DNA of 64,000 nucleotides from Podarcis bocagei (taxonomy: Eukaryota): NCBI GenBank assembly GCA_964188305.1, contig OZ076894.1; one strand, 5' to 3'. The position numbers and the translations under genes were made by a program. The notes under the pieces were generated by a model. It searched no databases. It worked only from the letters and a program-made list of their open reading frames with translations, and was not told where the DNA came from. This document shows, piece after piece, positions 5,215-24,413 of this stretch; within the stretch, counting starts at the first letter, position 1; the number at the start of each line of letters is the position of its first letter.

Positions 5215-5635
5215 CTGTGTCAAAAGTAATTCATGGCAAAGTGATTCAATTATAGTGAAGAGAATCCAAAAACTAAAACTTGCGTGGTCAGCTGTATTAG
5301 AAGCGAAATAATAATGCTCTAAATTTGTTAGTTAAACAACATGAACAAATGTTGTTTTTGCAAAAAAGACTATATTGCTATGTTTTATCCTTTGCGTAAG
5401 CATTTGCAGTGTGCAATCTTGAGATTGTTTCAGGGATAGTAAAATACATACATGACATAAAACAAAACAAACAGAGCTTACACAAAACACATTGACAACC
5501 ACAGGAAGCTTTAAAAAGGAGACACACAAACCACACACAAAAAAAAGCAAGGGGGAAAGAAGGGAAGAAACAACAACCAAAGAATTGCGATTCATGACAT
5601 GCGTAGCAAAGGGAATCCCAATGGCTGGCAAATAC

Positions 5636-8600
5636 CTTCAACATGGTCAGGGACATTTTCATCAGGAATACGCTCAATCAGAGTCTCAATAGACTCATCC
5701 CAAATGGGCCTGGTGTCAAAGATGTCCTCGGCAACTGACTGCTGGGTCTCAATGGATGGCACATTTTCAATAACTGAAACTTCTAGGGCGCTACTACTTT
5801 CATCATCTGAAACTAATTCTTGTTCTTTCTCTGACTGAGTAAGTCTATCCACTAATTTGGAAGCTTCATCGCTAATCTCTTCAAAGAACTCTATGGAGTT
5901 TTTGTAAAGGTCAAAAAAATGTTCCTTACTTTCTTTAGTGGGACTAACAGCACTGCGGGAAGCTGAGGCGCTTCTGTTCTTAACGGGCAACCGCGAAGGA
6001 AATATCTTTGGTCGTGAAGTCATCTGCTCGTCTGATTCTACCTCAAGCTTCATCTCACCCACCCTCTCTCTGGTCTCTGCTTCGGCCTCAGCATAGCTTC
6101 TAGCTTTGACTGAACGCTTAGCCTTTGAGTCCACGGAGGCACTTTCATCAGATTCAGATTTGCTCCTAACGTCTTGTTTCGCAGGTTGCTTGCATGTTTT
6201 GTCAAGAGCTTTAGCTGACTCTGGCTTCCAGACAGATGTCTCTGTATACAAACACTCCTGTTCAACTCTTTGGAAAACTGCTTTGACTGGAATCTTAGAC
6301 TTTGGTTTGGACGGGTCATCCTCCGATTCCTCTAGGGCCTCAACAAAGCTATCTGAAGGAAGGCTCTCAAGCTCTGATTGTTGCAATGAGTGGGATGCAG
6401 CGGGAGTTGTCCTAATGGGAATTTTGGATTTGCTTTCAGAAGGCACACTTTCCATGATGGCAGTAGGGATTTCAATCACAGATTTCTGCTCCTCTGGTGA
6501 GGAGTCTGGGGAATCGTCTTCCTGCTCAGCATACACCGACCTAGTGACTGTTGAAAAATCTAACTGTACATCAATCACAGTCTGCTCGGGAGAGACAGGG
6601 CAAGGCACCTGGGAGCTGTCAAACATGTCTTCAGTATCAGCTCTAGGGAAGAAGTCATCATCATCAGAAGGAGCAGTTTCTTTCTTTGGTGACTTTGAAG
6701 AGGCTGAAATGCCCATTTTAATAGGGATTCTAGATTTAATATCCCCTTTTGTGGTGTAGAAACCACTGGCCTCATCCTCTGATACAGACGTGAGTGAGCC
6801 TTTTATAGGCATCTCTGCTTCATCTAGTTCAGAAGACACAAATGGAACTGGGGGTTGCTCTTGCTGGAGAGATTCCAGGCCTTCGGCTTCTCTCATTTCT
6901 TCAGATAAGGACACATCTTCCTGAGACTGCTCTCCCATTTGGAAAAAGTGTAAGTTTTCATCAGAATAATTCCTCTTGGTCATGTCAATGGCACCACTCC
7001 TTGTCATTTCAAACAATTTCCCTTCCTGGAAAAGAAAGGGGTTTTGTTCACTGGTAGGCGTCCCTTCTTCTGTAGGAGTCCTGGCTGGTGTCGTGTCAGG
7101 TGTGGTGCCTTGTGATCTCCTGTCTACCATCAAGCCAAATATCCTTTGTTCTTCCTCTTTCACCCGAGCCTCAAAAGCATCATCATCTTCACGTATTTGA
7201 CTCCACTTGTCAGAATCCACATCTGTCCTGGTTATGATCACTTGGTTGATTATTTTCTCAGCTTCATCTCTGATATCTTGTAGAGCAGCTTCATCTAGTG
7301 ACGTGGCCTCTGATGTTGAAGTTGATTGTTTCTGAAAGATGCCCACATGTTTGGATTCTAACTCCATATAGATATCTTCTGAGGTCTGAACCTCAGAACC
7401 TACAGATGCTGGTGTACAAAGGGAACTGGTCAGTGCAATTTCCTCACTGAAGGTAGTTTCTACCTCAGCAGAATGATGAACCCCAGATGACTGGTCTGTT
7501 GTCATCCTTAAACCAGTTCCTGAACTAATTTCAGTGCTAGTAAAAAAGTGCTGTGAAGGGACATTTTCATAAGGACTTGTTATAGGCAGAGCACTGCTTT
7601 CATCAACATCATCTGCATTCCTTTCAGGGTCACCCTTTTGGGTTGTTTGAGGCGAATGGTCTGCAGAGTGTTCTACACTACAAAAATCCCTTTGTGCCAT
7701 CTCAACAATGTTGTTAGTTTCAGCCAAATCACTTCCCGAAGGGGAGTGAACAGGTGAAACAACAGTAGCCAATTCATCATTTGGGGATTTACAGCAATGA
7801 GAGGAGCCAGGGATACAGGAGCCCCCTCTGGTTCCCATGGCGACCATGTCTCTGGGTGTTACCTCCTCAGATGCTCCACCATCTTTCTCAGAATCATCCT
7901 GGTTGTGAGACGCCGCTGAGGTTTCATATAACTCAGCTATTTTGGGGGCGTCACCACCCACAGAATGGTAGAATGCCTCCTCAGGCTGCATCATGGGGCC
8001 ATTAGGGCTAGCCGTGTCACTCTCATCAGTGCTGTAGCACTTAGACTCGCTAGCTTGTGCTATGATGCTAGTATCTGAGGCAAGAGAGGTATCACCAGAC
8101 ATTTTGGTTTCCTCTGTTGGCTTATCTGATTCTGTGTTATCCTCTTCGGTACCAAATTCATGCTGCTTGGATTCAATAGGCTGAAACCCTGTTTCTTCAG
8201 GACTAGAACTGGAATCCCTATGACAAAGATGAGGTGAAGGAGGCTGCACCCTAATTACAGGCTCCATCAGCAGCCCAGAGTCAGCCTCCTTTTTCAGCTT
8301 TGTTAATTCTGGCTCACTTTCTGAAGAGGAAGAAGTCTTTCTAGATTCAGCTGCAGAAGTGAGTACAGTAGGTACGCCATCATCTTCTACAGCCGTTGAG
8401 GGTGCAAATTCAAGTTCAGACGCAGCTTCCAAATCAGAAGCTGAAGCAGCATCTTCTTGTTTGGGGTCCTTTCTATAGTCCCGCTTCTGCTTTGCTTCCT
8501 GTTCCAGCTCATCAAACATTTTGACTTTAGTCACCATTTTAAACATCTCTTCTTCTGGTGTGAACCTCCTCGTCGGCTCACCTTCGGGGTCATCTTCTGG

Positions 8601-11600
8601 CTCTTCGCTGACTTCAGGAATCACAGCTGACTTGGGTATGTTTGAGAGCATTTGCGAATCTGTTGTCTTGGGTGTGATTTCATAGCTAATTTCTTCAGAG
8701 CTGGGAGTCTCGGGTGAAAGAGGGCTTTTACCTGAGCTTTCCATAAGAGAGGTTTGCTCTAAACTGTCATCTTCAGCACTGCCATCGGGGTCACGTAAAA
8801 GTCTAGATCGCACAGGTGTCAGCTCTGGGAAGTTTTCTGCTTTGGCAAAGGCAGCCTGCATGGGACCAGGTCCTGGAGGGAAGCCAGTCTTTGTTTTCTG
8901 TTCTACGGGGCTGCTTTCAAGAGAATCACGGCAGGGGGATTCTTTGGTAGGACTAGGCTCAAGGGAATCGGGTGTTTTACGGGAGGAATTATCTTCCAGT
9001 ACTGGGCTTGCTTCTAATGAATCTTTATGGCTTATAGCTAAGGATTCATCTGCAACTGGGCTAAGACCTTCACTGTCTTGGCTAGGAAGTGAAAGCTCCA
9101 GTCCTCTACTAATGGCATGGTGCTCAAAGGATGCCTGATCCTCTTTCTCTAAAATAGTATCATGCACTTCAGATAACTTAGTTAAATGTCCTTGAGATAA
9201 CTCATCCCTGACAGCATCCTTATCAATCAATGTTGAGCTAGAATCTGTACATTTGCCTATCTCTTCTTTGGAGGTTGTAACTTCTACTTCTTCTGACAAA
9301 CGAGGAGAGAGGGACTCTGAGCCGATTATAACTTTTATGTCTTTGTCAGCAACAGTCCTTTCACTTTTTGTTGGAGAAAGTCCCTTTGGTGAATGTGCCT
9401 CTGCTGCTCTCTGCACTGTACTGGCTAATTCTGTTTCTTCCATCTGGTCAGCAGTTTCTGTTTTCTTTGGTGAAAAAGAGAGGCTCTCGGGGCTTGTTTC
9501 TGGAGTTTCGGCCAATCCCTCATGCTTATAACTTTCCTCAGAGCTGATCTGAGGGGTCCCATCGAGCAGGCTACCAACTGGAGAATCTGCTATGCCTTCA
9601 TGTTTAAGGCTTTCTGAGCTGCCATCCAGAGCACCACTTTGCAAGGAGAGAGCGGGCAAAAAACCATCTTTCACATATTCTGATGGAAATGTAACATTGA
9701 ATGGACTGGTCAGTACTTGATCTAAGTGAAGCTCACCTTCCTCGGTAATTGAAATGTGCCGGAACTGTTGGTATTTATCATTCTCCTCAAGCTCTTCCTT
9801 TATGACATCAGTAAAATCTGTGGACGTCTTTCTGTCTGGGCTGATTTGAAGGTCAGTATCCCCTTGGTCATCAAATGTCAGGGTCACACCCTTTGCATTG
9901 TCATCATCAGTTGCTGGAACATCTTTTTCTGCAGTTTTACTACTCTGCTGCTTTGTCTGCTGCATGGCTAAATCTTTTTTCAGAGTACCCTGTGCCTCTT
10001 TCTTAGATTGCAAGCCTGCCTCTGCCTGAGGTTCCTGGCTCTTTTTAGCTTTTGGACTATCTTTTTTGTGTGTGTCTCTTTGTGTCATTGCCTGCTTCTT
10101 TTCAGTGTCTGCCTGAGCAGCTCCTTTCTTAGCCGGCTCTTTCTCAGAGACCTGCTGTTTCTGTTTCACAGACTTATGCTCAAAAAGTCCAGCCTTATGC
10201 TTCGATGGATCTTGACCTGACTGGAAGGCTTTCATCAGTTCACGAACAGACATCGTTTCTTCAAGTCTCTCTGTTTTAGAAGAAGGAGAAACAGGTGGCT
10301 TCTTGGTTGTGGGAGAAACAGGTGGCTTCTTAGATGTGGGAGAAACGGGTGGCTTTTTAGATGTGGGAGAAACAGCTGGCTTCTTAGTTGTGGGAGAAAC
10401 AGCTGGCTTCTTAGTAGAGGGAGAGGAGAGTTTTGAAGCAGAGGGGGAAGCTGCAGTCTTTGAGGCAGAGGGAGAAGCAGGAATCTTTGAGGCAGAGGAG
10501 GAGGCTGCAGTCTTTGAGGCAGAGGGAGAAGCTGGTGTTTTTGAGGCAGAAGGGGAAGCTGGCGTTTTTGAGGCAGAGGGGGAAGCTGGGGTCTTTGAGG
10601 CAGAGGGAGAAGATGGGGGTTTCGCTTTGTAAATAATTTTTTTAGGCTGCGATAGCTTTGCAACAGACTTCTCGGTTGCCCCTTCTTTTCCTGGGGTGCG
10701 AACAGGCAATTTTGAACGTCCTTTCTGCTCATCTTCCACTCTCTTCTGAAGGGCTTTCACTTTATCTTTGATTGAGCCAATAGGAGTTTCTTCTATAACA
10801 GGAGACACAGCTGTTGCCTTGGAAGGCTCTGCAGGGGCTAACCCGACCTCTTCATCTATAGACTCATCTGAGCTGAACTTTGTTAGTCCTGAATGTTCTT
10901 TCTTTCCTTTGGTTTCTTCATCCTTTGGCTTTTGTTTATCTTTTAATTTCTTCCTAACTGGTTTTTTAATTTCCAAGGTAGGTTTTTGCTGGACCTGCTT
11001 CTTCTCTTGGCTTCCCCCACCTTTTTCAGAGCCCCTGCTTACAACCACAGCTTCAAATCTCTCTTCTACTATGTCTTCTTGTAATGTCTTAGGCCGCATT
11101 TCATTAAGTGACATGTAATCTTTTAGATCTTGGCTGAGATGATCGATCATTCCCGCCATGTCTTTCTTTTCTTTCTCTGTTTTCCCTTTGCCTATTCTAG
11201 TTTCTGTGCAAACAGGCTCGGTAACTTCCAGCGGAGCATTCTGCTTAGCCTCTTCTATTTCTTCATCGCTTACAAGGACCCATTCTTCTTCCGCCAGCTC
11301 TTTCTCAGAACTGGATCTTTGAAGAACTGGCCCTTCTTTTGGACAGCTTCCACTTCTCAGGATTTCGTTCACTTTTTCCAAATCCTCCTTAACTCTTTCC
11401 ACAATCTCAAATGGTTCTCCAGGTTCTTCATCGGCAGCTTTCACAAGGTCCTTCACCTTAATGGAGCCTGACTTTTCAGCTGAGTCTGTGGTCAAGATGG
11501 CACTCATTTTAATCAAATCTTGTTTCATCTCAGAGACTTCAGATAGCAAGTCTGGGCTGGCTAGGACAGGGACTTCATTGACAAGGTGACTTTTCAGGAC

Positions 11601-11632
11601 AGATGTTTCTGTAGATTCTGTTTCATCATCAT
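5636..11632 (-). CDS. ANK2: ANK2 giant alternative exon (giant/440-kDa ankyrin-B), 5997 nt = 1999 codons
   Basis: Lies within the 2060-aa ORF. Acceptor tttgcatcaaag|AT GAT, donor GAAG|gtattt, symmetric phase 1-1. Conserved blocks: EEEWVLVSDEEIEEA, MSVRELMKAFQSG, FQEGKLFEMTRSGAIDMTKR. Confidence 0.96.
10268..10623 (-). repeat. Coding minisatellite in the giant exon: about 13 units, mostly 27 nt (TPASPSASK / PPVSPTSKK)
   Basis: 27-nt periodicity visible in the DNA (e.g. tttgaggcagagggagaagctggtgtt) and 9-aa periodicity in the ORF. Confidence 0.93.
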
Positions 11633-13103
11633 CTTTGATGCAAATGGGGAAAAACATTGGAAATAAATGGAAATCGAAAATAGAGATTGAAAAAATGTAA
11701 TCAGGACTGAAATGACTGTCTTTGATTGCAGCGGTAGGAGGGTCAACAAAACTGTCTGGGTATGGTGGATCCACAAATCTGAGGGTGGAAAAAAAAGCAA
11801 AGCAAAGCTAACGGGGGGAAAACTGAAAAGGAAAGTGGGCAGGAAATAACTTGCTTAGTTTTCGCAGTACAGCACACACACACATACAACACCAAAGCTT
11901 TTTATCAACCAAGGACACTAGAAAAACAAAAGTGGGCAAGAAAAAGAAACAGTGGAATTTACACAAAGATAGGCATCTCAAGATTGTCCAGATGTTACAG
12001 ATCAATGTTCAAATAAAAACAGAGAACAAAGGTGTGGGGGTGGGGGGAGATTGTTAAGTTGGTTGGAAGTTGATCTCCTCAAAGAGAAAGCCAGTGGTAG
12101 CAAACTTCAGAACCAAAATTAGGTAAACGGTTGTAAACTTTTGTTTAAGAACCAAAGTTAGAAGTTGTGTATTTACATTTAATTCTGAGATAATCTAGAG
12201 TAAATGAAATGCATTGATATCTGAGGCAGCTGCAAACCGGCATTTCATCTAAGGGGAATCTTACATTCAGATGGTGACACAGACACACACAGGCTTTTAT
12301 TTCAAGAGGAATGGTCCTTTCCTTGGAACATCCTCATTATTCAAACAAATGGAGGGGAAATCAAGGGAAAGAGATGATGATGATGATAATATAAAAAAGT
12401 GGGAAGGGAAATTTTAAATAGTGACTAGCTCAACAGAGAATTCATAGGTTAGGGGGGAATGTAATGCATGGCAACCAAAAACATTCATACAGGGCACATA
12501 CACACACACAGACACAAATAGACACAGTACATATACATATATATGTAAGCCAAGTTATTTCCATGCAAAGCAAAGCTGTTGCATACATTGCAGGGTAAGT
12601 ATCCTTACAATAAAATAAAAGGAAAAAAGACACCAACAAAACTTAAGATGGTTATAAATGAAAAAGGCTTAAAATCATATGCAACATACTATGGTGAAGT
12701 ATTGTCCCCACCCCCACTATTAACATATAAAGCATCAGGAATATGTTTACAGTAAAACTTACTTCAGAGTAATATGTCTCCCCTCCCCCATATTTGTTCA
12801 GGGGTTTTGTGTGAACGAAAGCATTTTAAAATTTCTTATCATTTAGGAACACAAACGCGTGGAATTGGTTAAACTTTGAGACTATATGATATTGTAACTT
12901 GACCAAAAGGCCAAGAAATGAGCATCATGGAGAAGAAAAGCAGAGCAGAGGAGGAGCCCAACTAGAGAGGAGGTAAACACAGAGGAACCCGACCCAAGGC
13001 AGCCTGCAATTCTGCATGAAAAGATTTATTTAATGATGTATTTTAAGAATGTTTACCTCCCATTCTTCTGCTGAAAAGTAGCTTCCAGTGTAACTTCCTG
13101 ATC

Positions 13104-23662: not shown

Positions 23663-24413
23663 CCGTATTTTTCGCCCTATAAGACGCACTTTTCCCCCTC
23701 CAAAAATGAAGGGGAAATGTGGGTGCGTCTTATGGGGCGAATGCAGGCTTTCGCTGAAGCCTGGAGAGCGAGAGCGGTAGGTGCGCACCGACCCCTCTCG
23801 CTCTCCAGGCTTCGCGGACCTCTCCCCAAGCAGCGGGAATGCTCCCGCTGCTTGGGGAGAGTTGCCGGCATCCCGAAGCCTGCGCGCGCTGATCCCAGCG
23901 CCGGCAGGCTTCGCGGATCTCTCCGCAAGCAGCGGGAACGTTCCCGCTGCTTGGGGAGAGTTGCAGGCATCCCGAAGCCTGCGCGCGCTGATCCCAGCGC
24001 CTGCAGGCTTCGCGGATCTCTCCGCAAGCAGCGGGAACGTTCCCGCTGCTTGGGGAGAGTTGCAGGCATCCCGAAGCCTGCCCGCGCTGATCCCAGCGCC
24101 GGCAGGCTTCGCGGATCTCTCCGCAAGCAGCGGGAACGTTCCCGCTGCTTGGGGAGAGTTGCAGGCATCCCGAAGCCTGCCCGCGCTGATCCCAGCGCGT
24201 GCAGGCTTCGCGGATCTCTCCGCAAGCAGCGGGAACCACCGCTGGGCTCCCACGGCTTGCAGAGAGCTGCCTGTTTGCGGGCTGGGGTCGGGGGAAGCTC
24301 GGGCTGCCCCAGCCCCGCGCCTGGGGGGGAAATAATTTTTTTCCTTTATTTCCCCCCCCAAAAAACTAGGTGCGTCTTATGGGCCGGAGCGTCTTATGGG
24401 GCGCAAAATACGG
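23663..24413. mobile_element. Young Tc1/mariner-superfamily (Tc2/pogo-like) non-autonomous element with internal tandem array
   Basis: TIRs CCGTATTTTTCGCCCTATAAGACGC / GCGTCTTATGGGGCGCAAAATACGG, TA flanks, CpG-rich, no transposase. Confidence 0.88.
23806..24235. repeat. 99-bp tandem repeat (about 4.3 units) inside the MITE
   Basis: Unit start caggcttcgcgg at 23806, 23905, 24004, 24103, 24202. Confidence 0.95.

Follow-up and report, generated by a model that had tools for sequence, protein, structure and literature searches.

Does the tandem repeat encoded in the giant exon of a lizard ANK2 gene represent a remodelled copy of the microtubule-binding module of mammalian giant ankyrin-B, or a module of separate making? 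In the human protein, microtubules are bound by a bipartite motif in which 15 imperfect 12-residue repeats precede a BG-box of 34 residues (Chen et al. 2020, J Cell Biol, PMC7401806). The repeat module, through which the autism-linked protein restrains axon branching, is said to be limited to therian mammals and maintained there by selection; giant ankyrin-G and the giant ankyrin-B of birds, amphibians and fish are reported to have one repeat only, and reptiles are not mentioned (PMC7401806). We analysed a 64,000-nucleotide stretch of the genome of Podarcis bocagei (contig OZ076894.1; here called the window), which encodes an array of 9-residue units on its minus strand. A reading of the letters alone, without database searches (the sequence-only reading), had taken this array for a lineage-specific remodelling of the mammalian type of repeat. 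We consider it likely that it is instead a genuine, squamate-wide coding array in ANK2 that was independently expanded and that would act as a basic, multivalent microtubule-avidity partner of the BG-box.

Architecture and reality of the array

Database matches and exon order both identify the array-bearing gene as ANK2 and the exon as its giant, neuron-specific one (giant ankyrin-B), in agreement with the sequence-only reading. In a word-index search with 351 residues, the best matches were ankyrin-2 of Lacerta agilis (92%) and of Podarcis muralis (98% over the portion present in its model), and other squamates followed. The array is surrounded by an open frame of 2060 codons at 5592-11774 on the minus strand, and tblastn with full-length Zootoca ankyrin-2 recovered the ANK2 exon order on the same strand (Table 1). 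The giant exon is uninterrupted, with the ZU5/UPA exons on one side and the death-domain exons on the other, as for the giant ankyrin-B isoform. A Pfam scan of the giant exon returned no domain and no family, which is expected for a disordered insert and is uninformative.

The array comprises 13 units of two sub-families, separated by an 8-residue hinge. The seven type-A units read, in order, PPSSPSASK, three copies of TPASPSASK, TAASSSASK, IPASPSASK and TAASPSASK; the type-B units that follow the hinge are PAVSPTTKK, PAVSPTSKK, PPVSPTSKK and PPVSPTTKK. The total, the seven type-A units and the hinge had been counted correctly from the letters, and the five type-B units claimed resolve into four and a terminal unit; the limits given for the array (10268-10623) were essentially right. 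Tandem Repeats Finder (TRF) returned two arrays with a period of 27 nucleotides, one over type A (10428-10616; 7.0 copies, 83% matches, score 252) and one over type B (10285-10424; 5.2 copies, 91% matches, score 217). When the whole giant exon was shuffled 200 times with codons preserved, the top score was 58 and the mean 26, so the periodicity is far above an effect of composition and the tandem array is real.

Directly C-terminal to the last repeat lies the BG-box, whose core does not vary between the lizard, snake, turtle, bird and mammal sequences aligned; the array thus occupies the site of the mammalian 12-residue repeats, as had been claimed. The description of the array as basic and SP-rich also holds, since acidic residues are absent outside the last unit and Ser-Pro or Thr-Pro (S/T-P) sites are abundant. 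For comparison between species we extracted from all named matches the segment running from an upstream anchor (RSKLPVR) to a downstream anchor (EETMSVRELM). In the window this segment has 144 residues, a net charge of +23, an isoelectric point (pI) of 10.73 and 16 S/T-P sites. The first type-A unit, PPSSPSASK, occupies the start position of the single unit of turtles (KAQ-PPVSPSAK) and the array closes with PPVSPSSKTER, so that both of its ends resemble the old unit.

Logan contigs of four runs, each from a different study and organism (A, B, D and I), span the array with substitutions only and zero indels, and one of the four is an independent sample of the best-matching organism. An assembly artefact, which the sequence-only reading had named as a possible undoing of its claim, is ruled out by these contigs. 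The same succession of type A, hinge and type B is also present in gene models of about 25 other squamates.

That reading had further suggested that copy number may be polymorphic. No length difference was found among the four runs on the window, where contigs can hide rare alleles; variation does occur between genera, with three to eight type-A and three to six type-B units, and the window has one extra TPASPSASK unit relative to Lacerta and Zootoca. Two ankyrin-2 records of Anolis sagrei (P0003 and P0233) are one type-A unit (APASPSSTK) apart, which may reflect a true length allele or a difference between assemblies. A gecko-like Logan contig (L002:1-290, run SRR13336339) starts within the type-A sub-array; short-read assemblies can therefore break there, and copy numbers from fragmentary sequences should be treated cautiously.

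Distribution among vertebrates

All squamates sampled (about 25) have type-A units, a hinge of the form L-S-S-(S)-P-x-x-K-K, type-B units and a terminal KTER unit. The sample takes in geckos (Sphaerodactylus, Paroedura, Heteronotia and Eublepharis), the amphisbaenian Rhineura, the lacertids Lacerta and Zootoca together with the window, the cordylid Hemicordylus, iguanians (two species of Anolis, Sceloporus, Phrynosoma and Pogona), the anguimorphs Varanus and Elgaria, and nine snakes from python and boa through colubrids and elapids to a viper. An origin specific to lacertids is ruled out by the array of geckos, iguanians, snakes and other squamates, and the proposal of a lineage-specific feature fails with it, the array being present throughout the Squamata sampled, geckos included.

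Outside squamates, a single unit (for example PPVSPSAKTER) was found in more than 10 turtles, many birds, Xenopus and Rhinophrynus, and, in degenerate form, in sturgeon, manta and hagfish. Arrays of 12-residue units are restricted to mammals in this sample, with about 15 units in eutherians, 16-17 in marsupials and 8 in platypus; the figure of about 15 microtubule-binding units that the sequence-only reading gave for mammals agrees with the published one (PMC7401806). A period of 27 nucleotides is accordingly not the general vertebrate state. The terminal squamate unit corresponds to the single unit of turtles, birds and frogs and to the last copy in mammals.

Tuatara and crocodilians gave no match in two word-index protein searches (lengths 1133-6267 residues), in which turtles did rank, so that any tuatara model with this region would have been expected among the matches. 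A search of 50%-identity representatives added fish, frog and hagfish outgroups and no further reptiles. One mammalian Logan protein with a carnivore-like array (P0022) was used as one row of alignment A1 only.

Two mammalian records stood out. Platypus ankyrin-2 (P0276) has its 8 tandem 12-residue units (HPPASPSAKTDR ... HQPVSPAGKTER) in the approximately 100 residues preceding the BG-box. Monotremes are said to be without the repeat module (PMC7401806); given the platypus array, the mammalian array would predate the split of monotremes and therians. The 12-residue array of Myotis daubentonii (P0121) is unusually diverged, with many Asp-Arg pairs in place of Glu-Lys and with Pro/Ala replacements, and the protein forms its own 50%-identity cluster.

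Origin of the squamate array

The relation between the squamate and mammalian units can be read from their alignment. The type-B unit PPVSPTxKK equals positions 2-10 of the mammalian 12-mer, without E-[K/R]-H, as the sequence-only reading had proposed in calling it a shortened unit; KTER is found in the last unit only, and His and T-E-R are absent from every internal squamate unit. A 27-nucleotide duplication of PPVSPSSKT would strand E-R after the last copy, which is the pattern observed. We therefore propose that the array most likely began, on the stem of squamates or of lepidosaurs, with a tandem duplication of the 27 nucleotides (PPVSPSSKT) that open the ancestral unit adjacent to the BG-box. 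The array would then have diverged into TPASPSASK-like and PPVSPTxKK-like sub-families with a fixed hinge between them. The terminal unit PPVSPSSKTER together with the BG-box would represent the ancestral single-unit state.

In this model the squamate expansion is separate from the 36-nucleotide expansion behind the mammalian 12-residue '15R' module, and the two arrays probably arose independently. Single-copy taxa lie between and outside squamates and mammals, so that two expansions (two events) are preferable to an amniote array that was gained, then lost in turtles and birds and altered in period in squamates (three events). More broadly, the surroundings of the BG-box look like a hotspot in which different lineages amplify different pieces, of 12 residues in mammals, 9 in squamates, about 47 in Xenopus laevis and about 138, with the BG-box included, in a percomorph fish. 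In Xenopus laevis (P0261, isoform X8, residues ~1836-2290) nine upstream modules of about 47 residues contain IGSIKDKVKALQ, and PPLSPSVKTER stays single. The BG-box module is itself tandemly repeated in some teleosts: P0308 of Siniperca chuatsi has seven BG-box-like cores and P0153 has four, with a period of about 138 residues.

Sequence evolution within the array

Type-A units in the window have a mean pairwise nucleotide identity of 0.83 and a third-position identity of 0.66, and type-B units of 0.90 and 0.71, respectively. The three identical TPASPSASK units are encoded by differing codons and are thus not very recent copies. Type-B identity is 0.90 within the window and 0.93 within an unrelated lizard contig (L001), against 0.83 between the species, and codons are species-specific across units (for example TCT versus TCA for Ser, or GCT versus GCG for Ala). 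Such shared codon choices point to homogenisation or lineage-specific re-amplification of type-B units. Snakes present a different picture. Within-species unit identity is 0.74-0.76 in the two snakes compared, units are orthologous position by position, and exactly 123 residues separate the anchors in nine of nine snakes; diverged, positionally orthologous units of constant length indicate a frozen array. The concerted evolution invoked by the sequence-only reading is therefore supported only in part, by the type-B units of the two lizards and not by the snakes. Recent wholesale homogenisation of all units was rejected, given third-position identities of only 0.66-0.71 and the positional orthology of snake units.

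We also compared substitutions in the array with those in its flanks. Between close relatives, nine substitutions fall in the array, of which two change the residue (Val>Ile and Ala>Ser) and seven are synonymous, compared with six synonymous ones of 13 in the flanks. In the snake pair the ratio of synonymous to non-synonymous codon differences is 9:5 in the array and 10:20 in the flanks, giving pooled counts of 16:7 versus 16:27 (Fisher p = 0.019). The synonymous fraction of sites is 0.30 in the array and 0.21 in the flanks, and simple arithmetic that corrects for this content yields a crude dN/dS of ~0.18 for the array and ~0.45 for the flanks. This is a signature of purifying selection, and the direction of the difference, though drawn from small counts, argues against a neutral product of slippage.

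Comparison with known repeat modules

Squamate and mammalian arrays are convergent in bulk properties. The segment between the anchors carries a net charge of +19 to +25 in squamates and of +20 in mammals, compared with +5 to +6 in birds and turtles, and S/T-P sites number 10-17, 14-16 and 1-2, respectively. The two arrays share the gene, the exon, the site just N-terminal of the BG-box, a V-S-P-S/T-x-K core and the terminal unit PPVSP(S/T)SKTER; the window, with 13 units, exceeds ten repeats, and both arrays are strongly basic, with comparable unit number and S/T-P count, a net charge of about +20 and a pI of about 10.7 (the reported value for the human repeats is 10.6; PMC7401806). They differ in period, which is 9 residues (27 nucleotides) in squamates and 12 residues (36 nucleotides) in mammals. 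The squamate 9-mers lack His and the Glu-Lys/Arg pair, leaving no acidic residues, and fall into two sub-families with a hinge. Many of them have Ala at position 3, the spacing from Ser to Lys is one residue longer in type A, and the charge density of type B is about twice the mammalian value. The squamate array probably has a separate lineage of origin.

Giant ankyrin-G and the giant ankyrin-B of birds, turtles, amphibians and fish offer the simpler comparison of a single unit and a BG-box. The squamate terminal unit and BG-box are essentially identical to these, and squamates differ in carrying 9-13 extra units upstream. Disordered, lysine-rich and Ser-Pro-rich units are also a feature of other axonal cytoskeletal proteins, in the KSP repeats of neurofilament H/M and MAP1B and the basic repeats of tau. 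That likeness is one of analogy, as those arrays have no sequence relationship to the squamate units and reside in other proteins.

A predicted partner of the BG-box

Experiments on the human module allow the squamate units to be assessed residue by residue. Binding and bundling of microtubules grow with repeat number, five repeats being weak and 10 and 15 strong, and the BG-box, which binds microtubules alone, adds a 16-fold gain in avidity (PMC7401806). Little is altered when Glu11-Arg12 is replaced by Ala-Gly in every repeat, and mutation of Pro3, Ser5 and Lys9 abolishes both binding and the suppression of axon branching (PMC7401806). The residues omitted from the squamate 9-mer are E11, R12 and H1, that is, the pair found dispensable in mutagenesis plus the His that precedes the core. 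S5-P6 and K9 are retained in all type-B units, and Ser-Pro and Lys stand at the mammalian spacing in five of the five type-B and terminal units, with Pro3 in three of these five.

Given the shared charge, pI and spacing of Ser-Pro and Lys, a mechanism of the mammalian type appears most likely. The array, presumed disordered, strongly basic and multivalent, would partner the BG-box and give giant ankyrin-B a higher avidity for axonal microtubules. Its S/T-P sites may serve as switches, in that proline-directed phosphorylation would weaken microtubule binding; we infer this regulation by analogy. For the mammalian repeats the authors drew an analogy with tau, and the word phosphorylation is absent from their paper (PMC7401806).

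Alternative explanations

The sequence-only reading had the squamate array descend from an ancestral amniote array of 12-residue units that was shortened to 9 residues and re-expanded, with secondary loss in turtles and birds. Both arrays do occupy the same position next to the BG-box, share the V-S-P-S/T-x-K core and reach similar totals (10-14 units in squamates, 8-17 in mammals), yet no more than one clear unit is present in frogs, sturgeon, manta or hagfish, which makes a single copy ancestral up to the amniote stem at least. With turtles and birds also at one unit, common descent of the two arrays is not borne out in this sample: it would need a gain, a loss and a period change where independent origin needs two gains, T-E-R and H are missing from all squamate units but the terminal one, and type-A units have no mammalian counterpart. 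We regard this history as quite improbable, and an independent expansion as the likelier one.

Other readings accept a separate origin and differ on what the array does. It could be a neutral, low-complexity product of slippage in a disordered linker, tolerated rather than used; such an account fits a presumably disordered exon free of Pfam domains, copy numbers that vary between genera and possibly within Anolis sagrei, and the amplification of other parts of the same region in other lineages. We think it improbable, because type-A units, hinge, type-B units and terminal unit are kept in all squamates sampled at a constant unit length of 9 residues, array length and order are fixed in snakes (pythons, boas, colubrids, elapids and vipers), the array has a higher share of synonymous changes than its flanks, and one peptide is encoded in several codon versions. 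The array could also be functional otherwise, as a platform for proline-directed phosphorylation (with WW, Pin1 or 14-3-3 partners) or as a basic stretch that binds acidic lipids, in the manner of KSP/SPKK proteins. Sixteen S/T-P sites and a charge of +23 within 144 residues would suit such a role, as would a P3-S5-K9 triad that is incomplete in most units. This we hold to be very improbable, considering that the array is fused to the BG-box, itself a microtubule binder, that its bulk charge and S/T-P count match those of the mammalian microtubule-binding module, and that there is no pointer to any specific alternative partner.

Several points weigh against an independently expanded, microtubule-binding array. 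The full P3-S5-K9 triad is present in three of the 13 window units, the PAVSP units having Ala at position 3, and type-A units keep Pro and Ser but place Lys one residue further from Ser. Counting type B only gives about five repeats, which is the weak-binding number in mammals, and microtubule binding by the squamate array is extrapolated from mammalian experiments. The selection contrast is built on small counts, and support for transcription of the exon in this species is indirect, coming from annotated RefSeq-type models of relatives and from one run, available as contigs, whose RNA nature is a guess. Independent origin is a parsimony argument made on a sample from which tuatara and crocodilians are absent; the divergence of tuatara and squamates is placed at about 250 million years ago in the abstract of PMC7393497.

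Implications

Full-text searches of the open literature that paired giant ankyrin with reptile or squamate terms returned nothing relevant to a squamate array. The array contradicts the published statement that non-mammalian vertebrates are without the repeat module (PMC7401806). We see about an even chance that squamates and mammals independently built modules of more than ten units with equal charge and S/T-P load, and that high-avidity microtubule coupling is not the mammalian invention it has been proposed to be. If so, the suppression of axon branching through coupling of giant ankyrin-B to microtubules would not be confined to mammals either, and the link between this module and mammal-specific brain wiring would be called into question. 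The squamate array would provide a natural replicate with a different period and the same charge and S/T-P content, which can separate repeat number and charge from the exact 12-mer as the features that matter. It would thus offer a ready natural experiment on a well-characterised and disease-relevant microtubule-binding module.

Features of the window

Table 1. Coordinates of the array, the BG-box and the ANK2 exons in the window
Feature	Position	Strand	Basis or remark
Whole array	10266-10619	-	Translation; 13 units, begins after KKIIYKAK
Type-A sub-array, 7 x 9 residues (xxxSPSASK)	10431..10619	-	Translation and TRF; open-frame residues 386-448
Hinge LSSPSTKK, 8 residues	10407..10430	-	Translation; open-frame residues 449-456
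Type-B sub-array, 4 x 9 residues (PxVSPTxKK)	10299..10406	-	Translation and TRF; open-frame residues 457-492
Terminal unit PPVSPSSKTER	10266..10298	-	Open-frame residues 493-503; sole unit ending KTER
BG-box, 34 residues starting LEETMSVRELMKAF	10164..10265	-	Adjoins last repeat; first residue 504
ANK2 giant exon	5637..11636	-	tblastn; one 2004-residue block, 95.8% identity to Zootoca vivipara ankyrin-2 (P0238) residues 1490-3484
ANK-repeat exons	52-62 kb	-	tblastn with Zootoca ankyrin-2
ZU5/UPA-region exons, upstream of giant exon	17-30 kb	-	tblastn with Zootoca ankyrin-2
Death-domain exons, downstream of giant exon	0.2-4.2 kb	-	tblastn with Zootoca ankyrin-2

The top TRF score of the window (792) belongs to another repeat, at 23806-24236, which has a period of 99 nucleotides and 4.4 copies and lies inside an ANK2 intron.

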